DNA from: Selaginella moellendorffii
Lineage: Eukaryota > Plantae > Lycopodiophyta
Reading direction: 5' to 3'
Length of the DNA: 64,000 bases
NCBI RefSeq assembly: GCF_000143415.4
Contig: NW_003314300.1
Coordinates: forward strand, 1,409,014-1,473,013
Shown here: positions 1 to 15,200 of the stretch, piece by piece
Position numbering within the stretch: position 1 is the stretch's first letter
Layout of the letters: the number at the start of each line of letters is the position of its first letter
Made by a program: the position numbers and the translations under genes
The notes under the pieces: generated by a model
Database searches by the model: none
What the model was told of the DNA's origin: nothing
What the model saw: the letters and a program-made list of their open reading frames with translations, nothing else

Positions 1-1598
1 CATCAATAGCATCACCCCATGCAGCAGCATAAGGAGATTTCTTAGCTTGTGCAAGCGTAACAGGAATCTTCACCTCTGCTGCTGTGAATATAGCCATTTG
101 ACTCTGATGTAAGAAGCTCTAGCAGCTGCTCGTGCTCGCTTCTCAGCTTGCTCTCACTGATAAGCTCCACCCTTCGCTGTATAGGTTAAAGGGCGACCAG
201 AGCAGCTCAAAACCTGGATAAGATCAGGATCTCGGTGATGCACGGGTTCAGGAACCATATCCTCAGGTTCAGGTATATTGTGCTCGGGCTCAGGATCAGG
301 AACCACCTCAGGAACGTGATCAGGCTCTGGAGCTCGTGTCACAGCAGAGGTTGAAGCCCCCCCTGCAGCTGGAGCATAAGCACAGCCAAGTCGAGGTAGA
401 GGATCATCCTCCTCATCTTCCCATGGATGAAAGAAAACAGGCTGTGAGCTCGCCCTTACTTTCTCCACAAAGAAAACCTGTAGAACTCCTGGATCCTTGT
501 GACGTTGAAAATACACATAAGATTCATCAAAGATGACATCTCAACTCACAAACTCTTTTCCCGAGTCTAGATGAAGGAGTCGGTATCCTCGCTGCTCATC
601 ACTATAGCCCATAAATACACACTTCTTGGATTTAACATCCAATGTCCTGCGTAGTTCATTAGGAACATGAGAAAAAGCTAAACAGCCAAACTGCCATAAG
701 ATATCCATGTGTGGACGTTGCCCAGTCCAAGCCTCTGGTATCTGAACCTGATATCAAAGCAATAGGTTATATTTTTTTTTGGCACGAGCAGTGCCATAGA
801 TGCTAAGACAGGATGGCGTTGTCTTCTTCCTCCAGAGACATGGAGCAGTTCGATGAGACAAATTTCCTTGCCTGGAAAGAATGTGCACAGTTCTGGTTTA
901 TGAGGTGGGGATTTTGGTTTGTGGTATCTGGATTGAGAAAATGCCCATCCAAGGATGATGATGACACAAATCCATACAACGAGTTAATGCACATGCTCGT
1001 GTGGCTGCTGCTATAGACTGTATAGCTCACTGTAACAAAGAATCACGTCCACCATCTTCTTGAAAGTCCACTCCCATAATTTCACAAATTGACTTCCAAT
1101 TCTCAGCAGAACTCTTCTCCACATTCATGTGGACACTGTAGAGAGGGCCAAGTCCTCCTCCTAATGCTCCATTTGCCCTAGCATCCAGGTCTTTCCACTT
1201 GTTGTATGGATCTGTATCATCATTGTCCTTAGACGGGCATTTTCTCAATCTAGATACCATAGGTTAGAATCCCCACCTCATAAACCAGAACTATGCACAT
1301 TCTTTCCAGGCAAGATGATTCATCCTATCGAACTGCTTGGAGGAAAAAAATGATGCCATCCTGTCCTAGCATCTATGGCACTGCTTGTGCCAAAAAAAAA
1401 AAAAAATCTAACCTATTGCTTTGATACCATGATGAGAGAAGCCAAGCCTCATGGCCTAGCACTCTATAGAGAATGAGAACACTCCCCGAACAATCCCCTA
1501 GGATGGATTTCACACAGGATGGGAAAGAAAACTAAGAAAGCCCTAAACTGAAGGAATGCAACTCAAGCCAGGTGGCTGTACGCCACGTGGCTCTAACA
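1..1598 (-). mobile_element. Degenerate, rearranged Ty1/Copia LTR retrotransposon (5' LTR, PBS, gag start, integrase end/RT start; runs off the left edge)
   Basis: On the minus strand: LTR TGTTAGAG...CATCA at 1598-1430, directly followed by a tRNA-Met-type PBS TGGTATCAAAGC (1429-1418). A gag N-terminus follows (ORF 1027-1260). Pol remnants read AFSHVP..LDVKSKKCVFMGY..DVIFDES and IPVTLAQAKKSPYAAAWGDAID. Confidence 0.8.
749..1429. repeat. Inverted repeat (~230 bp arms, 749-983 and 1198-1429) of the Copia PBS/gag start
   Basis: 749-983 aligns to the reverse complement of 1198-1429. Both encode VS.LRKCPSKD.DDT.PYN (ORFs 813+ and 1027-). Confidence 0.9.
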
Positions 1599-1764
1599 CA
1601 GAAGCTGGAACAAATGAAAAACCCCTAATGGGAATGAAACTTATAAGAATGTAAGCTTTCAGAACAAAGAAGTAAAATCTCCATCACTTGCATCACTTGC
1701 GATAAGTTTTATCTTGCCCAGCTTCTTTCTTCTCCTGCCTGCTTACGTGTTCCTTGATGTCCTC

Positions 1765-2250
1765 TCAGATTTGATCGCAGTTGTCACAGAACCAGGGGCA
1801 GGAGCTCTCCCTGGGAGCTTACTCCAACACACTCGCAATGAAACCTTACGATGTCACAATCCCTGTAGCAGCACGTGATTACCTTGCCTCGAGCACTCTC
1901 CCGTTTCTTGCAAGTACAGATGGTGCAATACAGAGCCGCATCCACAAGTGGAGACTCGATGTCTGCACGGTTTGCAGCCAGCTGCTAGTCGAGCTTACAC
2001 AAGACGTGTTGTTGAAGGTCAAACTGGTCGAATGTAAAGCTCGAGCCCTCCGGCAAGTCCATAGAGAAGTAATGAGCTGGGAACGTGTAGACGAAGCCCT
2101 GGGAACTTCGAGAAGAGTCAGTTCCAAATTGGATCTCACGCTCCAAGTCAAAATCCACAGACCTCCATCTGAACAGTATCTCCCGCTTTTTGTTGACTAC
2201 CACGAGAAGCAAGTCTTTGAAGACCTTAGACTCACTATATGATGGCCCGA
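1765..2250 (-). pseudogene. 5'-truncated Uma2-like nuclease C-terminus fused to a PHD finger (one stop, one frameshift)
   Basis: EIQFG..FVYTFP..F...F.FD.F.LQQHVL aligns to the C-terminus of ORF 2503-3243. In frame past TAG (1985-1987) it reads QLAANRADIESPLVDAALYCTICTCKKRESARGKVITCCYRDCDIVRFHCECVGV..., then a 1-nt shift in the run at 1795-1798 gives WFCDNC. Confidence 0.75.
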
Positions 2251-2256
2251 GGTTGT

Positions 2257-2280
2257 TTAGGGTTTAGGGTTTAGGGTTTA
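2257..2280. repeat. Short plant telomere-motif array (TTTAGGG)x3 / telo-box
   Basis: Direct sequence ttagggtttagggtttagggttta. A similar (CCCTAAA)x3 lies at 5600-5620. Confidence 0.85.
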
Positions 2281-2502
2281 AACCTTAAACCCCCCCCAAA
2301 GATTTCCTGTGGCCGGGATCAATCCAAAGAGCGTTACATGCCTGAATATGCATCGAAGAATTTCCCACTTCTAAGAGTCGACGAATTCTCCTTCATGACA
2401 GCTAATTTGGCACTGACATTGTAACAATGATATGAATTCTCCCCTCTGGAATGTGCCATTCCCCTTGATTCGAACTTTAGGGCAAGCGATTTGTAGCGTT
2501 TC

Positions 2503-3243
2503 ATGGACGCTTTATCGAAGCAAGCGATTGCCGCCTACAGCAGAGGGCAGCGGGGGCCATTTCTCGTGGCCACAAATGTCCCATGGGTGGTGTACGACGC
2601 CTGGATGTGTAGCTGCGACTCGACTTGGAGGCTAGAGTACAGGAGGGGTGAGGTTTTGGCCTATGGGGATCCGTCAATAGTCCACAGCACCGTGTCATCT
2701 GCGCTAGAGCGCTCCATCATCTTTCACATCCTCCAGATTCCGGGCATTGGGCTAGCCTCTCTTCCACAAATGATCACTGGCGCTGGAGCGTCTCGCCTGC
2801 GGACCATCTCTGGCGACAAGGAGCCGGACGCTTGCTTCTTCTCTGGGTCGTCGCTTGCGCAGCCAGCGCGGGCGGTGTTGGAGGTGGCGTACAAGAACGA
2901 GCCACTGGAAGTTTTAAGGGAGGTTTTGGATCTGTGGGTGGAGTCGGGCTGCTTGGTGGCGATCGGGGTGAAGATTGCGCGGCCTGGTGACGACTTTACG
3001 TTTGTAGCCAGGGAGAGAGGCAACGATGGGATGGAGATCCAGTTTGGGCCCGAGTTTTGCAATGAGCAGAATCGAGAGCGCTTTGTGGTGAAGTTTCCAG
3101 TGTCGTCTTTCACTGCTGATGTGAAGGGTGACTACTACGTTGAGTTTGATCTGTTTTGGTTGCAGCAGTATATATTTCGTATGATCGAGCAAGAGCGTCA
3201 AGCTTTTGAGCAGAGCGTGGAGAGTCTCTGCTGTAAATCCTAG
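2503..3243 (+). CDS. Uma2-like PD-(D/E)xK restriction-endonuclease-fold protein, intronless, 246 aa
   Basis: Intact ORF with Uma2-type motif order: DPS..H...S, G.SR.RT..GDKEPDACF, AVLEVAYKNE.L..L. Two paralogous remnants flank it. Confidence 0.75.
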   Translation: MDALSKQAIAAYSRGQRGPFLVATNVPWVVYDAWMCSCDSTWRLEYRRGEVLAYGDPSIVHSTVSSALERSIIFHILQIPGIGLASLPQMITGAGASRLRTISGDKEPDACFFSGSSLAQPARAVLEVAYKNEPLEVLREVLDLWVESGCLVAIGVKIARPGDDFTFVARERGNDGMEIQFGPEFCNEQNRERFVVKFPVSSFTADVKGDYYVEFDLFWLQQYIFRMIEQERQAFEQSVESLCCKS

Positions 3244-4463
3244 AAAAAAGTAAGATCGAGCAAAAATATCTTAGCAATATGAATTTCATGGTGTCGCTGC
3301 TGCAAGAGAGGAAAGAGGATATGTTGCTCTGGCACGACAGAGATTTGTGGCATGGAGAAGAACTAGGAATTGTCGAGGGAGCAAAACCCAACTGAGCTTT
3401 GTGTCTACGTTCCAAACAAAAAGAACGACTGCCACCGGTGGGTCCTGGGCTGGATCACCTCGCCTCCAGCACAAGGTTGGCTCGCGGCTGCAGAGTAGTA
3501 CTCTTAGATAATGGTAAGCTCCTGCTTTTGCTTTTCCCAGTTAGATCGTGTTTTCTCCGTTGTTTGGTACGACCAAGTTCACACGGCAGTCCACTTGCTC
3601 CATGTTCTCTCCAAGGTCGTCCATAAATCTGCTTCTGGAACCCGCCCTCCTCTGAGATCGTCTCCGCAGCAAATGCCCGCCTGCGGCATTCACAGTCCAC
3701 CGAGGGGTCGCACCCAAAGCCACAATCCCTACTATCCTCCATTTGCAACGAGGTTGACTAATGCTTGCGTTTGCGTCAGGTCCTTTTACAACAAGTGACA
3801 ATCTTTCGTTTGAGCCTTTGATGGAGTTACTATCCTACGCGAGGAATAAAAGACCAAACGTTCTATTGCTGGTTATATAGATGGATATTCATGTGTTCTA
3901 CTCTCTCTTTTGCTAGATGGGACCATTTGTTGATGCCGAGCATCCACACGTCAAGCAGGGAATCACTGATAGAGTTGGTAGAGTATTTCACTCCTTGATG
4001 CTCGATTTCCAGCCGGGAAGGGGATTGATACGCACCTAAACAGAAAAAAAAAAATCACTAAAAATTGGGAAACAAGGATGATCCTAACACTCTCCTGGCC
4101 CTGGAAAAGAGGCACCATCCCCATCTGATGCTCGCCTGGGAAAGACCAAAGATTAAGAAAGAGCAAAGGCACAGTCCAGACCTGCTTGCGCGACTCCATG
4201 TCGGAGAGATCGATCGAGATGACACACGGCTGACCAAATGCTCCCGCAAAGAGGCTCTGCATTGCTGCTGCCCTCTCGTGCCCTTGCTCTTTCGCGCTCT
4301 AGCTCACAGAAATAGAGAATATTCGAAGCATCTAGGGCTAATGTGCTTTATCATGTACGTCCATGCCAGATCACAACATTAAGGTTTGTCTTTCTAGGAA
4401 GAAGTACAGAGTTTCACTCTTTGATCATATCTAGTCTCCACCACCTCTGCATGGCACGAATTT

Positions 4464-5600
4464 TCAGTGTATTTTGAGTCCTTGCCTTGTTTTGTACCAC
4501 TTCCACATTATCTGTTGACAGTAGAAGATGATGTCATCAAGTGGTTCATGGTCCGCAAACCCAGCACAATCCAAATAGTACCATCCAACCTTACACTGCA
4601 AAAACCAAAGAATTAGTTCTAGTGATTATAATGAAAATTTACCTTGGCATTGTCACAGAGAATCATTTTTCTCCCATAGTCTCAACAAAGCCTGTCATTG
4701 ATCTCAGGGTTCATTGGCAATCTGTCAACAACAATCCTGTTCCCCTGGTACTCTTTGAAGAGCACAGTCATAATGTGCTTTTGGAGTTCGTGGAGATCAC
4801 ACTCCACGAGAAAGTCATGCTTCGGCTCAACATTTGCAAACAACCAGCTCAATGGGAACTTCAAATGGAATTTGTCCTTATTATCCTCAGAGCACACCTT
4901 CGGACTAAAATCAATGTCTTTGCGCTTTTTACTAACTTCTTTCTAGAAGCAGTTGAACTTGACATGTAGAGCATATGAGGTTTTCTTTGACTCAGTATAT
5001 TCCCATCTTTTGACCTCTGCTTTGAGTGTTTTCACATCTTCATTTTTGTATGCAACCTCGATGGCACACTTTGGGTACTTTGTATAATCAATACTTAAAA
5101 AGGAAGCATTTGATTCTTTGCAAGATCCATTTGCTAACTTGAAAGTGGTGCTACCCGTAACAAATACCAATTCACGAAACCTTGGCACATCCTTTGCTGG
5201 AAAGTGAGTCGCAAAGAAGTTAGCCATTTGTTCTGCCACTTCTAGAACAAACCATGACGCTGTCACCTCATGCAAACTGGAAGGGTCACCAAAGAGATAA
5301 ACTGTCCCAAACTCTCCTCCCTCGAGCTCATAAAAGAATCCCAATCTCCAACAAGTTTCCATTGAAAGAGACTAGATTTCCCAAGAGCTGTAAGACACAA
5401 TCTCTGCAATGACAAAGGGCCCATGGCCAACCCCTGACACACTTACTTCTAGGTACCTTGCAACTGTGTGCTTGAATCCTTCATTTAGTCGCTTCAATTC
5501 CTGTTTCGCCTCCACTTTCTTATTGTCTTCAAGCTTGAAGCTGCTGAGAAGCTGGACAATCTGCTTTTCTTCTACCTCTAAGCTTTTCCTCTTTTCTAGC
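4464..5600 (-). pseudogene. Decayed coiled-coil + Uma2-like nuclease + PHD finger gene
   Basis: One frame through stops at ~5373, 4943 and 4682: GHGPFVIAEIVSYSSW..TCWRL..FGDPSSLH..KESNASF..AIEVAYKNE..DLHELQKHI..LC*DYGRKMILCDNAK. After a GT-AG intron (4642-4596) it continues CKVGWYYLDCAGF..IFYC. Confidence 0.75.
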
Positions 5601-5817
5601 CCTAAACCCTAAACCCTAAACACACGCCATTTCCCACTGTGCAATAACTCTTCAAACCCTAATGTGCATGTGTCACTGCTGATATACGTGTACGAATTAA
5701 TATTGAGAATATCAACGCCATTCCGTCAACGGAGAAGATTGGGAAAAGTAAACAGGATGGTGATGAACGACACAGGTGATGATGAGTAGCAATCGGTTGC
5801 AATACGTCGACTGTGCC

Positions 5818-6279
5818 TCAAAGACGATTTCTTTGGCGGAGCTCGGAGAAGAGCGAAGCTATGTTGGTTATATCGGCTGGCGAGTGAGGGAATTCCAAGT
5901 CCACGTCCATGCCATCAAACCTGGAAAGTGATCACACAAAGTTAGATCTATTGTTCCAAGAACTCCGGAAGATAGTGTTAACTTACCCATAACTTCGTGC
6001 CAAGGCAATGCTACTCCGCACAAATTCGCCCCTGCGGGAACTGTTGCTCGCCCTCTGCGAGAAGAACGTCGTGTTGGACCCGGTGCCACCTATCGAGAGG
6101 AGGGTCTTGATGAGCGGATTCTTGCTCTTGACCAGGCCCGTACACTGTCGCGCAATATCGATGTTCTCCACCGGGATTTCCACCCGGAAAGTTGTGCTGT
6201 TGACACTCGCGAACGCGAAGCAGAGGTGCGTGTACACGTCTGTGCTGAGATCCGATGCTCTTGAAGACTTGAAGTTCTC
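5818..6279 (-). pseudogene. GH18 (class V) chitinase N-terminal fragment
   Basis: YTHLCFAFA..KTLLSIGG..SSIALARSYG, intron 5986-5921, then FDGMDVDLEFP (DxxDxDxE catalytic motif). Stop at 5818-5820; no signal peptide. Confidence 0.85.
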
Positions 6280-7200
6280 ACCACGGACAGGCGCTCCATC
6301 CATGATTTCGAACTTTGCAAGTGTTTCACTTTTGTTGTAAGCGTTGGCACCTGAGCCGGTCGACTCGCACTTTCTAATCTCGATCTCCATATGCTTTATC
6401 TTGATGCGGACCAGAAGAAAGTAAATCTTCCCGACGATTACATCCTTTAAGTGGAATCTGGCACAGAAAAAGCACTCACGCTCAGTTGACACAAAGCGTG
6501 TTTCCACGTATTCGAAACGCACTTGCTCTTACTGTACTCGAATTCGATATGCAAGCAATCCTCGATGCCGACCTCCATCTACAAAGAGAAAAACCTTTTT
6601 TAAAAAGAAAACTATCGATGTTTTCACCTTGATACTGTTGTTCACGTCGGGGTGCACTAGAAGTTTTCGAACCTGGTAAAAACAAAGCACATAAGAGCGA
6701 TGAATGTTTCTCCACAAGTATCTCATTACCCAGTATTCCACAATCTTAGGTACGTAGCTGCGAGTTATAGTCACCTTAAGAACATATCTGGCAAAACAAT
6801 CCATTACAAAAAAATATCCAAGCCGTGAATGTATACCTGAGCCTCACGTTGACACCATTGTTACGAGTGATATTGCATTTCCACTGACGAAAACTCGAAA
6901 GGATAGATTTTCCTCTCGTGAATCACACCCGGAACATCGAGCTCCCTCACTGTAGAACACGAAACGGAAGTATCAGATGACAATCTAGAGCAAAAAACAA
7001 ACTCACACACCCAAGGAAGTGAAGTCGTAGAAATGCCCTCGGTCCAAGTAAAACTTTGGCAATCCACAAACCAAAATCAGCGAAACAAAAGAAACGCAAA
7101 AACTAACGCACCTATTTGGCCATTCACGGTTTCTCAATGTGTATAGCTAGAGGATTACTGCCAGTTTCTAGGAGCAGGGGCGAGGGTTATACTGATTCCC
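6280..7200 (-). pseudogene. VPS26: VPS26 (retromer subunit) partial pseudogene
   Basis: Exons VRELDVPG..YPFEFSSVEM, NGVNVRLR/YVLKVTI, MEVGIEDCLHIEFEYSKSK and FHLKDVIVGKIYFLLVRIKIK..DGAPVRG. Frameshift/stop at ~6861; the 3' exons are replaced by chitinase sequence. The 5' limit is approximate. Confidence 0.85.
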
Positions 7201-7834
7201 TCCACACGCGACGTGTTTCACGATCGAATTTTTCCTCAGGTACTCTCACCGATGAGTTTCTCAATCTCTTAACTTTTTTTTTTCCTGCTGGCAGCCTCCT
7301 TTTAATAGTTTCATGTTTGAAGATTCATCCCAGCAGGTAGCTAAAAAATCTGTTTTCTCGGACTAAGTGTTGGTCGCATTTCCAGATATCTCTACTGCCG
7401 AATCCAAGTGTGTTTCGCCTGGATGAGGTATCCATTGGATATCAGAAGTTTCCCTTTTCCTCTTTGGAGATCCAAGCCATTATCTCGGACATCCTTGGAC
7501 ACCTTATATCTTTGCAGCTGTGACGAGGTCCTGAATCTTGCGGCTATACTGCTAATGCAGTGAACTGCAAAAGCCTTTGATTGAGCAGCGACAAGAAGAT
7601 TGTCGAGCTCCTGTACGTGAGCATGCTCGGGAGTCTATTATCATGCTTCTTCTGGAGGAATTAAAAACAAATTGAAGTAAGCGTTCTCTGGAAGTAAGCG
7701 TTTAGCAGTAACTCACACCACTGTTCAAGCTTGGAAGAAACAAAAAGCTATGCTTGTTAGTTTAGCTTACCGCTTCTCTCGTCTTACCGGAGAGCAGCTT
7801 TGCTATTTACCACATTGTAGCGTTGGAGTTTTCG

Positions 7835-10070
7835 CTACAGCTCGTCTCTATCAGGGGGTGATGATGTAGAGCTCGTTTTGGTTTTGGTGTGCTGTGTCGT
7901 TGGCATTGCAAAAGGAATGGCTGCGTGTTTCTTCACAAACTGGACCAGGCCTTTTAAGTTTGTCTTTGCGTGAGCGGTGATCTGTGGCAAGGAGTTACAC
8001 CGAGTTTTTGAAAGGGAACTGGACTTACAGGTTGGTTTTTGTGGCCCGCGGGGTAGAACAAAAATGCTGGATAAGTCGTCACCTATCAAGGAGAAAAACA
8101 AAGTTGAGAAACGGGAATAGGCTACACTTTGAAAATATTACCTCTAACTTGGGGTGCTCATTTGAAGATGTGTCAATCTGCGCTATGACAAGGGATGGAA
8201 TGCCTTTGAAAAACGTCCCGAGTTTAGCTACTGTTTTGTTGGCTGTCTCGCACATTCCGCACCATGGGCTAGTTATCTGTGATCGAAAGCATGAGCCTCT
8301 TAGACAAAAGAGTGGACGTAAAAATAAGAAAACATCCAACCTGGAGAAAGACGTCTTTGGAATCATCAAGAACAATCTTCTCGAACGTTTTCCCAACTAC
8401 AATTCGTAGATCTCCCTCGTCCTGCACAAATCCACGACCGTCAAGACAACCAAGACTAAAGTCTTAGTACCTTGGAAGGGATAGGCTCTGATTTATAGTG
8501 TTGTGTAAGATCTCCAGACAACAAATTCTGGCAGAAAGCCTGGACATACAATGCTGTTGGAAATGCAACACTTCGTGAATATACTATTATTACGAACCAG
8601 AATGTTCTGCAGATTGATATCTTCCTCCAGAAGAAATTTTTGGCCATTGTCATAGTTGAAGGCAACGATCTGTTGTACGGCCGTATTAGATACAATGTGA
8701 AATGACAAAACGACATCAAAACTCACAACAGGCTTCTCAGGTTGAACCCCGTACATCGAGAGAAATGGCATTGCAAAGTCCATGTCACTGTTTTCTACCA
8801 CGAGAAAGATCAACTGCGAAAGGATAAGCTAGCTCTCAAGAACTTTTTAACAGACTCAAAGCACAGTACCTTGCCCTTGAATGCCATTGCAGCTTCCTCA
8901 AACAGAGGCAACACAGTTTTCACGTCGATTTCATTTGCAAACAGTAACACCTGCACAGGGATTTGAAAATGACACACAAAGAAAAAAAACAATCAAACCT
9001 GAAGCTTAAGAGGACTGGAGTTTATTCTGGCAGCATTCTTAGACGTCATCCTTACAACGACAGGGAACTTGTTGAGCTCGACAAAATCCAGGAGATTTTG
9101 TGCACTAAAAGTCCCATCTGAAACAAGCATTTGTCTCGATTGAGAATGAAGATTGAGAATTGGTCTTACCGAAAGGAACATAAAACTCGGGCTCATTCTT
9201 CTGTATCCACACCATCGGTGGTTTACGAATACTCGAATGAAAAGTCTGCGCCACATTGAGGCTGTTTGTTTGGATAAACGGTGTGCCAACTTCCTGCTTT
9301 GCAGCTTCGATAAAGCTCTTGTAGTCATCTCCCTGGACAAAACTTGATAAATCCAGCAAACTACGTAAGCAGGAGGACAAAGCTCACCTCAAATTTGTCG
9401 AAAAATCCGGCCACAATGACAGAACTATTCGCGAGAAAATTTTCCGCGTCTTTCGTTGAGACCACTGTAGAGGCTGGCGAGCCAGTTTTCTTTCTCACCC
9501 AGTCGATAATCTCCTCCCTGGTCAGAAAAATCTCTTTTTAGTTTAGAGCATGAAAGAGGAAGAACCAAAAGAACGAGAAAGAGGAAAATTTACCGACTTA
9601 GAGTCACCTCCCGTGTATGCTTGCTGGACAGATCCATTGACTAAGAAGAGCACTGTCGGGAATCCCTTGATATTATAGAGCTTGGCGGTCTTTGGATTCG
9701 CAATGGCATCGATCTTGGCAAAGAGAATGCCGCCATTGCCATCGCCATAGCCAGCAAGATCCAATGCTGCTGCTGCGAATTCCGGCAGCAGCGCCGCGCT
9801 CCTGCTACACCAGCTCGCGTACCCTAGAAGAAGAACATACTCCCGCGACGAAATCACGCGCGGCGCGCTCTCATCTGTGAGATCGGCCACGAAATTCATA
9901 GACACATCGCTCCTGGGGCCTTCCACTGTGTCGAGATCCTCGTCTTCCAGATCCAAATCCTCTTCCTCTAGAGCATCGCGATCGACGCTCTCCAAGCCGT
10001 GAATCCCAAGCGGCAATAGGAGTAGCAACAGCAGCACAGAGAGAAGCCATAGCGCCCGGAGAAGCTGCAT
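7835..10070 (-). CDS. Protein disulfide isomerase-like (PDIL1-5/1-6 type), multi-exon
   Basis: Signal peptide, acidic tract, a-domain WCSRS, b/b' exons, a'-domain WCGMC, C-terminal RDEL ER-retention signal; GT-AG introns. Confidence 0.92.
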
Positions 10071-10281
10071 TGCCCTGGATCGACCAAATGAAAAACCTCC
10101 AACGATACTACTAGAATATACGCTATTTTTTTAAATTTTATTCACGAACCAAGGGACTATTCCAAGAATATTCCATGGCATGTTAGCGTTCCTGCACACA
10201 AAAATCCTCGGAAAATCAGCCAGAAAATTAAGACTGTTAATATCAATGTAAACAGTATATTATCAAATCAAATCTCAGAGA

Positions 10282-10745
10282 ATGTTATATGTATTTGCTC
10301 TTCTGGTGTTCATTTTAGTTTTGGCAATTCAACAAGCAAATGCAGTAAGTATAATTATAAGAAATTTGCTTTTGTATTTAACTTTGGGTTTGTGTGTCTT
10401 GTGTGGAAGGCTTGTGGTGGATTAGGGATGTGCTCAAACTTAATGATGAGCACGTATTATGATGATAACTTGATAGCAACCTGCGGGGCCAAATCTGTTT
10501 CTGCTGTTATCAGCACTTGCATTGCCAACATGAATGGAACTTTGGTGGTTGCTCCCTTCGGTAGATATCGTGCTTCTTGCACAGGGCCTGTGTATCTCAC
10601 AGGAACTAAAATACAAGTTGGTCAATGCAAGAAAATAAATGGAGAAAAAGTCACTAGTACTTCCCTCGATTTAGCCCAAATAATGAGCTATAACATATAT
10701 TATGGTTTATATTTTTGTAACTGCAAGCTAGAAATACCTGGGTAG
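10282..10745 (+). CDS. Secreted cyanovirin-N homology (CVNH) lectin-like protein, 2 exons
   Basis: Exon 1 is the signal peptide MLYVFALLVFILVLAIQQANA, followed by a GTAAGT intron. Exon 2 has LIATC..CIANMNGTL..GRYRASC..GQCKKINGEKVTSTSLDL, matching the CVNH two-repeat pattern. Confidence 0.7.
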
Positions 10746-12273
10746 AAACTATAATATTCAGCAGAACTTCATTGGACAAGTTTATTACTAATGGTAGAAT
10801 TTTATTTCATATATATGTGTGTGTGTACATATACATATATACATAGGCACACTAAAACATTTTCATTAATTTGAGATATCAATATGAGTTCAAACTAAAG
10901 GTTGATTGTCTGTAAGAACTTATTATAAATTATTTATTTTATTTTATTTTAAATTAACAAAATTTAAATAGAAAAAATAATTAGATATAAAAAAGTAAAT
11001 GATTGATATGTTGAGCATGTCTTTGGTGGATTCTTAAGGAGTTCATTTTTAAAAAAAATTGCTATGCATTGCATGTAGCAATGCTTGGTTTGCTTAATGG
11101 TAGTTTTATTATTACTTATTAATCTAATTGATCAAATAAAGTTTATAATTATAAGCATGTTTGTAATTTATAAACACAAGATTAATCTTATTGCATATCA
11201 ACCATTAAATGATAGAATAAAAAAGAATATACTAGAAAGGGTTTAGGAAAGTTTATAAATTATAAACATGTTTATAAATTATAAATACCAGATTAATCTA
11301 AATGAATACCAACCGTTAGATAGTAGAATATCCTAGAATATCCAAGCATATTCTAGGTATATTCACTACCATCCCAGTCCCCCTATAGGTTTGCTTAAGC
11401 AAACCAAAAACCTTAAAACAAATAGGTTTATTCAAAGGGTATAGTCTTTCAAAGTATATATAGTTTATTAGGTATTCAATTTTATTTAGTTTATTTTATT
11501 ATAATTTAGGTGATATTGTGAGTGCATAAAATATGAAAAGGGAATACAAAAAATGAATTAACCTAAAAACTCTAATTTATATATAGAAACAAATGATTCA
11601 AATTGAAACCAATGTGACAACTACTAAAATCCCACTATGCTAATATTAGTATACGGCATCGTAGCCATACATTTAAACTTCACATCATCCCCTCCTCTTG
11701 GAATAATGAAAGGCCATCAAGGTTCTCTTATAAATGGGCTAAGATCTAAAGGAATATCAAGAGGAGGTATCAATAGATTTGTAAATGGTATCAATTGTTA
11801 TTAATCCCTTTGTATGAAGCATTTCAACTGTTGCACATGTATAATTTCTAGAGGATTGGTCTACTAGATGTCATATTAAACTTTATAAATTTGTGGTTTA
11901 ACTTGCTATAACACCCAATATAGTCTTTGTCAAGACCCCTGACAAGATCAAGACTGGAAAATGCAAAAAGACAAAGAGAAAAGCTAGTGGAAACAAAGAA
12001 AAGGCCTTAGACTGGCGTTGATTCAGATTGTGGAGAAATGGAACAAGGCTAACCTATATATACTATAGGTTGATGAAGCTCCACCACTCTTGGATCGAGG
12101 ACGGCCTAAATATAGCTGAGGTCGAGGAGGCGCCACATCATCATCAGGAATGTGGCTCGAGACTCAGGAATCGGGAAGTGTCTCGAGAGTCAGGAATGTG
12201 GTCTGCAGGTCAGGAATCCGGCGAGAGTTAGGAATGTGGCAAGAATTGGGGGATTCCTGACAGCACCCCCTCC

Positions 12274-15200
12274 TCAAGAACGAGTGGAACGAGGATGTGA
12301 ATGAGAACGAAGAGGAGGATGAGATGAGTGGCGAGGGATGGGAGATGGAGAAAAAGAATGAGGACTGGGACGAAAAGGATAGCGGCAATGGAAGTCCTGA
12401 ACAAGGTCAGGAGAATGAATCAGGTTGTCTGCAGGTTCCCAAGTGCGTTCCTCAGGTCCGTAACCCTTCCAGTCCACCAGATAGTAGAGTTTAGACCGTG
12501 AAATCTTGGAATCAAGGATGTCCTGAACCTCATACTCAGACCCATCCTCGAGCTGCACTGGTGGAGGCGGAGGAATGACCCGATTTGGAATAGGACTGGG
12601 AATATAAGGCTCAAGGAGAGAGGAGTGAAAAACGGGGTGAATTTGATATGAGGAGGGAAGTGCAAGGCGATAAATGACAGGATTAATGATGGCAATGATA
12701 GAGAAAGGACCAAGGCGTTTGAAATCGAGTTTTGGACAGGGCCTAGTGGTGGAGATATTTCGCCTGAGGAACCAGACTTTATCCCCGATATTGTAAGGGG
12801 GACAATCCTGACGATGGACATTGGCAAATGTTTTATGAGATTCCTGAGCACGATGGAGGTGGAAGGAGATGGAGTTGTGGATTTCCTGGAGGTTGGAGAT
12901 AAATGCCTCAGAGCGGGGATTTGAACGAGAGGATTCAGATGGAGAAGGAAGTGAGAGATTGAATCGGGGATTTCGGCCAGAGTTCGCAAAGAAGGGGGAA
13001 ACTCGAAGAGAGGAGTGAACAGAGTTGTTATAGGAGAACTCAGCAAGGGGAAGGATATCGAACCAGTTATCCTGATGATAGTTGATGAAGCACCTCAAGA
13101 ATTGTTCCAACGTCTGAATCGTTCACTCGGACTGCACATCAGTTTGAGGATGATATGCCGAAGAGAGGTTGGCCTTCACTCCAAGCAGCTGCAAAAACCG
13201 TTGCCAGAAATGAGAGATGAGCTGAGGCCCCCGATCCGAAACCACATCTGTAGGAATCCCATGAAGTCGGAAAATTTCCCTGAATACCAGTTTTGCCATG
13301 TCCTCGCCCGAAAACTCCTTGGTACATGGCAAGAAGTGCGCCATCTTTGTGAAGCGATCCACCATGACTAAAATGCTGTTGAAGCCTCCAGAACTCGGAA
13401 GATCACTCAAGAAATCCATGGAGATGGATTCCCAAGGACTTGAAGGGACCGGAAGGGAACGAAGCAAACCTGAAGGAAGGTGGCGAGGTACCTTATTCCG
13501 GACACAAGTGTCATAGGAGGTAACAAAAGCTTTGATGTATGTGAGGCCACCAAAAGTCCCGTGCAACTAGCTCATAGGTTTTCGCAATGCCGAAGTGACC
13601 AGCAGTCGGGCTATCGTGGCACGCCATCAGGACCAACCTTCGAGCATCACCTTCAGGAACGTAAAGCTGCTCCCCACGGTACAATAAGCCATCTAAGAAC
13701 TCGAACTCGTCAAATCGCCGGCAGTCGGGAATCACTGGGTGTCCAGCCTGAAGATGGGGGAAAATGTCGCTAGCGAGATCATCGGATTGAAGATCGTTTT
13801 TGATTGCATCCATCAAGGAGGAGTCCTGAGGGGCCAGGGAAATTGCCATAACTTGAAGCCGATCAGGACTGAGGATAACTTGATCCTGTTGATCGAAGGC
13901 AGGATTACCAGGCCTGAGACTGAGATAGGAGTGCCTTGAAAGAGCATCAGGAAGGCCTTGAAACTTTCCAGGTCTGTACTTGATAACAAAGTCAAACCGA
14001 CTCAGGAATTGTGCCCACCTTGCTTGACGACGGCTTAAAACTCGGGAAGTGGCAAAGTACTCGAGATTTTTGTGATCCGTCCAAACTGTTGTTTGATGGC
14101 TCGCCCCCTCCAAGAAACGGCGCCACTCTCCAAAGGAATCCACGATGGCAAGGAGCTCCTTGTCGTGGATTTCGTAACTGATCTCCGCAGGCTGGAATTT
14201 CCGAGAATGGAAAGCAACCGGATGAAGTTCGTGATCCGCTCCGAGTTGAGACAGCACAGCACCAATGGCAAAGTCGGAGGCATCAGCCTCGATGAAGAAA
14301 GGTTGTGAGGAATCAGCATGGATCAAGATAGGAGCAGAACTGAAGGCTGCCTTGAGTGTGTTGAAGGCCTGCTGGGCAGCAGCAGACCAAGAGAAGGGAA
14401 CATCCTTGCGAGTGAGATGTGTGAGAGGAAGGACAATATCAGAGTAGTGATTAATGAATTTGCGGTAGAAGTTGGCGAAGCCAAGGAAAACCTGAATGTC
14501 CGACATTGATTGTGGAGGCTCCCATTCGAGAATAGTCTTGACTTTGGCAGGATCCATCGTGATACCCTCAGGAGTGACAATGTACCCAAGGAACTCCACA
14601 GACTGCTGATCAAAGGAACATTTCTCAAGCTTCGCGTATAGGCCGTGTTCTCGCAGCTTCGCTAGCACCTTGCGAACATGTTCGTCATGCTCCTCCTGAG
14701 TTTTTGAGTAGATGAGGATGTCATCGAGGTAGACGATCACCATCTGATCAAGAAACTCCCGAAAGACGTCGTTCGCCATGTGTTGGAAAACTACTGGAGC
14801 ATTTGTCAAGCCAAATGGCATGACAATGTACTCGAAGTGGCCATAGCGGGTTCGGAACGCAGTCTTCCATTCATCACCAGGCCAGATCCGGATCAGGTTG
14901 TATGCTCCACGGAGGTCGATCTTGGTGAAGAAGCGGGCACCGCCGAGGCGTTCCAACAGGTCCGAGATCAGGGGCAGCGGATAACGGTTCCGAACAGTCA
15001 CCTTGTTCAAACCTCGGTAGTCGATGACTAGCCGCAAGCTCCCATCCTTCTTCTTGACAAAGAAGATAGGCGCTCCAGCCGGGGACTGCGAATGCTGAAT
15101 GTAGTCTGAGGCAAGGTTCTCATCCACGTACTCTTTGAGGGCCTTAAGCTCGGACGGAGATAACCTATAGATAGGCCCCCACGGAGGTGACGCTCCTTTC

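Follow-up and report, generated by a model that had tools for sequence, protein, structure and literature searches.

Does the lycophyte Selaginella moellendorffii carry a nuclease that is guided to chromatin by histone marks? The question is raised by a cluster of genes spanning less than 4 kb within a 64-kb stretch of its DNA (hereafter, the window), in which sequences of the restriction-endonuclease-like Uma2/DUF820 fold lie next to modules that resemble the PHD, a chromatin-reading zinc finger; an earlier note made from the sequence alone had put forward a candidate system of this kind. We find no functioning histone-mark-guided nuclease system at the locus—the fused copies are untranscribed pseudogenes, the live gene has no PHD and the lineage with the best PHD lacks the catalytic Asp. 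Instead, the locus probably represents a small eukaryotic branch of Uma2-like proteins in which an old lineage fused to a PHD decayed repeatedly, and which retains one live, PHD-less gene here.

Three Uma2/DUF820-like PD-(D/E)xK paralogues lie inside 4 kb, in the strand order minus, plus, minus (copies 1, 2 and 3). A tblastn search of the whole window with the open reading frame (ORF) of copy 2 as the query recovered copy 3 at 5425–4742 on the minus strand (expectation value (E) 1.3e-22, 29% identity, with stops inside) and a 64-residue piece of copy 1 at 2137–1952 on the minus strand (E 4e-4, improving to E 1e-8 with the paralogue P0005 as the query), confirming three divergent paralogues in alternating orientation, as first noticed. 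No further family copies were found in the 64-kb window when twelve other family members were tried as queries. The ORF of copy 2 matches the last 246 residues of S. moellendorffii protein SELMODRAFT_418792 (P0001) at 100% identity, which identifies the window as lycophyte nuclear DNA. A second version of the whole interval, with the same three copies, is present at another locus (L003), of which positions 4134–13397 align to window positions 61–8567 at 84–94% identity.

The family is predicted to be Uma2-like on the basis of fold and motifs, with the sequence-model test falling below threshold. An AlphaFold model of copy 2, built on an alignment of 27 sequences, reached a mean predicted local distance difference test score (pLDDT) of 92.5, and a Foldseek search of the PDB with this model placed the Uma2/DUF820 structures 1wdj, 3ot2, 6okh and 9y1l in ranks 1–7 (probability 1.0, E 2e-6 to 3e-3, target-normalised template modelling (TM) score 0.53–0.69). 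The nearest models in the ESM Atlas were fungal hypothetical Uma2-like proteins (TM score 0.70–0.77 over 204–229 residues), and one cluster of these neighbours carries PF05685, the Pfam Uma2 domain, in 23% of its members. In the family alignment, W42, H61, E127 and E133 are invariant and GD (55–56), K106, P108 and D109 are near-invariant, giving the PD...E-V-x-x arrangement that is expected of this fold. The expected Uma2/DUF820 fold was thus recovered through the top structural matches, with PF05685 itself detected only at a sub-threshold score (13.8 bits, E 0.04 on copy 2); the pieces of copies 1 and 3 had no Pfam Uma2 match. A Crinkler-type N-terminal header or ubiquitin-like translocation domain was not encountered in copies 2 and 3, which begin with a short helix only. 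By eye, the model of a distant Selaginella paralogue (P0018; SELMODRAFT_403728) begins with a ubiquitin-like stretch ahead of its Uma2-like domain and then runs into a long unrelated C-terminal extension or set of domains; this may be another fusion in the family or a merged gene model.

Copy 2 (2503–3243, plus strand) is an uninterrupted ORF of 246 amino acids that has no PHD, and the description of the middle copy as an intact PD-(D/E)xK-type ORF was correct. It keeps the family motifs GDPS-x-VH, KEPD (containing D109) and LEVAYKNE (containing E127 and E133), and its ratio of non-synonymous to synonymous substitution rates (dN/dS) against paralogues is 0.22–0.44, so that, judged by its sequence, the copy is under purifying selection. 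Contigs of a probable RNA run cover it at 2398–2735, 2818–2984 and 2989–3254 with 0–1 differences, and a stranded RNA-seq run adds a few reads whose sense fits a plus-strand transcript; together, low-depth contigs and reads extend across 2398–3307, and an RNA-type contig begins at 2398. Copy 2 is the sole live member of the three at this locus. Both the metal-binding Asp and Glu are kept, and its product would most likely act as a free-standing Mg-dependent nuclease or nucleic-acid binder, like the solo Uma2 proteins of cyanobacteria.

The annotated start of this gene lies elsewhere. The first 127 residues of SELMODRAFT_418792 derive from a 153-amino-acid ORF antisense to copy 1 (1781–2242, plus strand, taken from the ORF listing), which has no Pfam match, and no reads or contigs were found over 1700–2397. 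Because nothing covers this region and the residues come from the antisense ORF, the annotated N terminus is unsupported and probably spurious. SELMODRAFT_431954 also borrows its N terminus from an ORF antisense to a copy-1 relic, and SELMODRAFT_430862 (1242 amino acids) joins a tandem-repeat array to a copy-3-type pseudogene, skipping the stops. All three current gene models look wrong.

Copy 3 (4467–5630, minus strand) contains a full-length Uma2-like domain and a PHD, and reads from an ATG at 5630–5628 to a stop at 4469–4467. In-frame stops interrupt it at 5374–5372 (a conserved Trp codon), 4945–4943 and 4684–4682, the last of which falls in the first Cys pair of the PHD and adjoins a five-codon deletion. 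The PHD is encoded by exon 1 (approximately 4699–4643) and exon 2 (4595–4470), separated by a 47-nucleotide (nt) GT..AG intron (4642–4596) that follows the CDNxK motif, and has lost several zinc ligands—the second Cys is replaced by the stop, the zinc-binding His by Tyr, and the last Cys is gone. A TG(TTTAGGG)3 block at 5622–5600 replaces codons 4–12 and breaks the start frame; at this site, L003 and a third locus (L001) carry ordinary coding sequence, MACVC(V/A)SDVVAR.... The L001 paralogue, a 1.4-kb sequence of 80% identity, lies on an unlinked scaffold. At all three loci (window, L001 and L003), copy-3-type sequences agree in the placement of the PHD and in its intron but differ in their lesions, and between them the paralogues retain every PHD ligand position.

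The C-terminal module of the copy-3 type is, by sequence comparison, an ING-type PHD. Scored against the Pfam PHD model (PF00628; threshold 24 bits), the window version reached 15.2 bits, the L003 version 21.5 bits with the intron removed, and the L001 version 34.1 bits over the full model when read with X at its breaks; the copy-3 lineage therefore matches the model and the copies in the window do not (15.2 bits for copy 3, no match for copy 1). When PDB sequences were searched by phmmer with the module from L003 as the query, the best matches were all PHDs of the ING family (ING1, png2, ING3, YNG2 and ING4; E 9e-6 to 1e-3), with Tyr, Met and Trp aligned. We take these three residues to be those that form the cage for histone H3 trimethylated at lysine 4 (H3K4me3). 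The extinct fused proteins may thus have docked through the PHD on methylated histone H3 tails, the copy-3 lineage having kept the cage Tyr, Met and Trp.

The nuclease half of this lineage points away from cutting. Copy 3 has KESN, with Asn for the catalytic Asp of the KEPD motif, and the three copy-3-type sequences carry KESN, KEPN and KELN. Given that Asn replaces the catalytic Asp in all three and that their dN/dS is well below 1 (see below), the lineage was probably non-cutting, which argues against a mark-guided nuclease in the very lineage that has the most ING-like PHD. A chromatin binder whose nuclease fold was disabled is a likelier description of it than a cutter guided by chromatin. 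The earlier account of copy 3 needs amending for its disrupted start frame, the loss of several zinc ligands and the Asn.

Copy 1 (1765–2215, minus strand; delimited by tblastn with copy 2 and P0005) is a stump. Its homology begins near 2215–2179, at about residue 160 of the 246-residue domain, and the remaining domain piece occupies 2179–1988; the N-terminal two thirds of the nuclease domain, which hold the catalytic motifs, are absent, and the piece is too short to include the acidic PD...E motifs. An in-frame TAG (1987–1985), a linker and a PHD-like C4HC3 module (1927–1802) follow, then a frameshift at approximately 1801–1798, the last Cys pair (WFCDNC, 1797–1777) and a stop at 1767–1765. 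All eight C4HC3 ligands are present with the correct spacing, split by the frameshift. The twin of copy 1 in L003 is a single uninterrupted ORF of 162 amino acids (L003:5857–6342, minus strand) that runs from nuclease tail through linker to PHD and has seven of the eight ligands. The neighbours of the copy 1 module in a protein language model were all PHD clusters (score 0.89), which we treat as a lead only. An Arg occupies the cage Trp position, and the cage Trp is likewise absent from the PHD remnant of LOC112342307 (described below), so that a preference for H3K4me3 should not be assumed for either. The upstream end of copy 1 is a telomere-type repeat at 2254–2276; the copy would be a 3′ stump that was cut at this repeat and then duplicated together with copy 2. 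The claim that both flanking copies continue into an ING-type PHD thus holds for copy 3, with its 47-nt intron; in copy 1 the module is PHD-like, is reached through one stop and one frameshift, and is attached to only the C-terminal third of a nuclease domain that lacks the catalytic motifs.

Could these broken copies still be functional, with read-through, editing or alternative splicing circumventing their stops? In copy 3, TAG accounts for two of the three stops, and the one at 5374 stands at a conserved Trp codon that is TGG in L003, a pattern that bypass would accommodate. However, no RNA reads were found on copies 1 and 3 in four runs (two deep RNA runs and two contig sets), two kinds of stop are present, and the damage goes beyond stops to frameshifts, a broken start frame, deletions in the PHD and lost zinc ligands, with two thirds of the domain missing from copy 1. 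Bypass of the stops is close to refuted, and is the least credible of the alternatives that we considered. Copies 1 and 3 are untranscribed pseudogenes.

Whether the nuclease and PHD ever formed one gene is a separate matter, given that neither fusion in the window can be read without crossing stops, a frameshift or an intron, and that fragments of unrelated genes also occur in the interval; a PHD exon of an ING-like gene or pseudogene might adjoin the relics by chance or local shuffling. Evidence from outside the window speaks to this. The intact Selaginella RefSeq gene LOC112342307 (P0009) is followed by a PHD remnant at L004:5100–5249, in which a stop stands at the second Cys and whose frame differs from that of the annotated last exon. 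In the fern Adiantum capillus-veneris, two genes (P0010 and P0013) have decayed PHD pieces (CxCxxC, WCHFDCVGL and MCETC) directly past the stop codon. At least four lineages (copy 1, copy 3, LOC112342307 and the two Adiantum genes) thus have PHD remnants 3′ of the nuclease domain; none were seen downstream of P0007, P0005, P0006, P0003, P0012 or the fern gene P0015. The order, strand and linker length are the same in copy 1, in copy 3 and its two paralogues, in LOC112342307 and in the two fern genes, and in the L003 version of copy 1 the nuclease tail, linker and PHD form a single unbroken ORF. Furthermore, pairwise comparisons of the three copy-3-type sequences gave synonymous divergence (dS) of 0.27–0.38 and dN/dS of 0.33–0.42 (Fisher p ≤3.5e-5), indicating that most of their divergence accumulated while the fused protein was under purifying selection and that each copy broke later. 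Chance juxtaposition, which such selection on the copy-3 lineage also contradicts, is close to refuted. At least one old vascular-plant lineage would therefore have encoded an N-terminal helix, a Uma2-like domain, a linker of approximately 25 residues and a C-terminal ING-type PHD, a form that appears to have evolved for a long time as a protein-coding gene before decaying repeatedly.

Every readable PHD-bearing copy is broken, and no intact fused protein emerged from protein searches. An exhaustive phmmer search with copy 2 against 1.84 billion representatives returned 38 matches, of which 37 belong to the family and have no PHD; the remaining one (P0033) is a TPR-repeat protein matched over a short stretch only. 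A word-based search with a copy-3-type ORF returned no matches, and none of the seven matches of a family-profile search had a PHD. The intact fused homologue that the earlier note had called for was thus missing among the protein representatives searched, a weak negative because a gene model ending at the first break would leave a fused protein unseen. Nor did the literature searched hold any report joining Uma2/DUF820, or Crinkler restriction-endonuclease domains, with a PHD. The Uma2-like–PHD architecture, which includes a known fold, is apparently undescribed, as initially suspected. Were intact Uma2-like–ING-PHD genes to exist in lycophytes or ferns, they would constitute an undescribed class of proteins tethered to a histone mark, either H3K4me3-guided cutters with defensive or selfish roles or, without the Asp, readers built on a dead nuclease; we regard this as a rather unlikely prospect.

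The dispersal of the family raises the possibility that a mobile or selfish element carries it as cargo or employs it as an enzyme, in which case the broken copies would be dead insertions derived from an intact nuclease–PHD master copy still located elsewhere in the genome. A single genome contains at least ten dispersed loci, of which many are broken; the family has a patchy distribution among taxa (a lycophyte, ferns and fungi); the 1.4-kb unit recurs at 80% identity on unlinked scaffolds; and fragments of other genes lie within the same interval. The copy 1 stump was duplicated together with copy 2: a decayed copy-1-like stump at L007:3404–3623 (minus strand) lies head-to-head upstream of SELMODRAFT_415380 (P0003), which brings the number of loci with the co-duplicated pair to at least three. 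However, the shared 1.4-kb unit, in which homology ends approximately 45 nt before the ATG and approximately 170 nt past the stop, is bounded by neither terminal inverted repeats nor target-site duplications and lacks a poly(A) tail. The copies have no linked transposase or reverse transcriptase, the retained intron shows that they are not retrocopies, and each locus has different neighbours, all of them ordinary plant genes. The dN/dS values below 1 between copies fit host genes as well as elements. On balance, we consider a mobile origin unlikely.

The telomere-type repeats had also seemed candidates for transposon ends. The TG(TTTAGGG)3 arms at 2254–2276 (plus strand) and 5600–5622 (minus strand) form a perfect 23-nt inverted pair 3.3 kb apart, for which no matches are expected by chance. 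The first marks where copy 1 is truncated and lies 5′ of copy 2; L003 has (TTTAGGG)2 at the same junction, but the inverted pair is absent from the paralogues. The second is specific to the window, as alignment to L001 and L003 showed, and replaces copy 3 sequence at a place where the homology of the paralogues runs through; we therefore rejected the pair as transposon ends. Gene conversion, break healing or a promoter telobox are possible origins of the repeats. A telobox-like TTAGGGTT also precedes the ATG, by approximately 30 nt, at each of the three copy-3-type loci.

Taken together, we favour as the probable history that the locus holds three members of a small eukaryotic Uma2/DUF820 branch, which would comprise Selaginella and Adiantum sequences, distant fungal kin and unlabelled transcript-derived sequences, and that its fused lineage decayed to leave copy 2 as the live gene. 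Several observations weigh against this reading. Family membership rests on fold and motifs because the Pfam Uma2 score of copy 2 is below the gathering score of 27 bits and the family alignment, run as a profile against PDB sequences, gave no match; only 3 of the 27 aligned relatives have a Uma2 Pfam match at all (best E 6.9e-4). The copy 1 PHD is weak, with no Pfam PHD match in the window version and 11.7 bits in the L003 version, and its AlphaFold model (from a seven-row alignment) is unusable at a pLDDT of 46. The RNA evidence for copy 2 is thin, at a depth of ≤4. The TAG at the conserved Trp codon is common to the window and L001 and absent from L003, which calls for either a parallel mutation or gene conversion. 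Plant genomes may contain intact fused genes, given that the searches covered protein representatives. Finally, the vascular-plant sequences form a polytomy in the maximum-likelihood tree, and a single clade of the PHD-bearing members is not rejected by an approximately unbiased (AU) test (p 0.37). The proposal that the fusion is an old architecture and no accident is supported by its presence in at least four lineages and by the dN/dS of about 0.4 in the copy-3 type. On the sequences compared, the fusion is common to lycophyte and fern members; ancestry for the whole plant family goes beyond what the tree and the AU test show.

The rest of the interval is a patchwork. Divergence between the window and L003 is very uneven (dS of 0.055 for copy 2 and 0.375 for copy 3, with flanks 84–94% identical), a pattern that fits gene conversion of copy 2, or a mosaic history, better than it fits simple allelic haplotypes. 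Between copies 2 and 3, and outside the nuclease family, lies a fragment of a DNA polymerase alpha subunit B gene (3743–3976, plus strand) made up of two exons and a 45-nt intron; it is 90% identical to L003:1287–1540, which sits inside a gene with OB_DPOA2 and DNA_pol_E_B domains. RNA reads fit the fragment only partly and run on into unlike sequence, and hence come from the real polymerase gene elsewhere. Fragments of this neighbouring gene are scattered through the interval, with further pieces at 3978–4379 and 7122–8072, the former drawing opposite-strand reads from a source gene. A Ty1/copia-type integrase fragment (541–708, minus strand; SH3_retrovirus, E 3e-18), separate from the nuclease copies, adjoins a 141-nt inverted-repeat structure (844–984 and 1197–1337, within 741–1437). 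The flanks of the cluster (5983–6522, minus strand, and 8000–9340) hold ordinary plant genes, in which exons like those of VPS26, a protein disulfide isomerase and a GH18 chitinase were recognized by eye, and the matching neighbour in L003 carries thioredoxin domains.

The fused genes at this locus are thus fossils beside one live PHD-less paralogue. Their value lies in what they indicate about the fold: no function has yet been demonstrated for Uma2/DUF820, a large bacterial family, and hardly any work exists on its offshoots in eukaryotes. A fusion to an ING-type reader that was selected in early vascular plants and then repeatedly lost would point to a chromatin-linked role for the Uma2 fold, and the natural series of fused proteins, fused proteins with a dead active site and proteins that lost the PHD could be used to probe its function.

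Among known systems, the closest are the Uma2/DUF820/TT1808 proteins themselves (PF05685, COG4636; 1wdj, 3ot2, 6okh and 9y1l), which share the same restriction-endonuclease-like fold and gave the best structural matches, and which are likewise small solo proteins with the motif order helix His/Glu, PD and E-V-x-x. In cyanobacteria, solo Uma2 proteins occur in paralogue cassettes (PMC2701414), a tendency that resembles the present family; these solo proteins have been discussed as stand-alone toxins, and nuclease activity of Uma2 is given as predictions only in these sources (PMC2701414, PMC3424549). Unlike them, the present proteins are eukaryotic, exceed them in length by approximately 60 residues and possess an additional helix at the N terminus as well as a long one at the C terminus, and some members have introns and a C-terminal PHD, which is unreported for Uma2 in the literature searched. 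The uncharacterized fungal Uma2-like ‘restriction endonuclease domain-containing’ proteins (Mucoromycota, Ascomycota and Mycena) are the closest predicted structures and of similar length, those of Mycena being weak sequence matches, but no PHD was found among the fungal matches examined, and they fall outside the vascular-plant group on a long branch in the tree. The PHDs of ING proteins (ING1–5, Yng1/2 and Png2), readers of H3K4me3, resemble the copy-3 module in the pattern Y-C-x-C ... M-I-x-C-D-N-x2-C-x3-W-[YF]-H-x2-C-x-G; the present PHD is joined to a nuclease fold and not to the ING N-terminal domain, and every copy examined is damaged. In overall design, the fused form presumably parallels FAN1 (UBZ and VRR-NUC, a PD-(D/E)xK nuclease), in which a PD-(D/E)xK fold is combined with a small zinc module for a chromatin-borne mark, although the nuclease family, the reader and the mark all differ, nothing observed here points to repair functions, and the fused plant lineage has no catalytic Asp.

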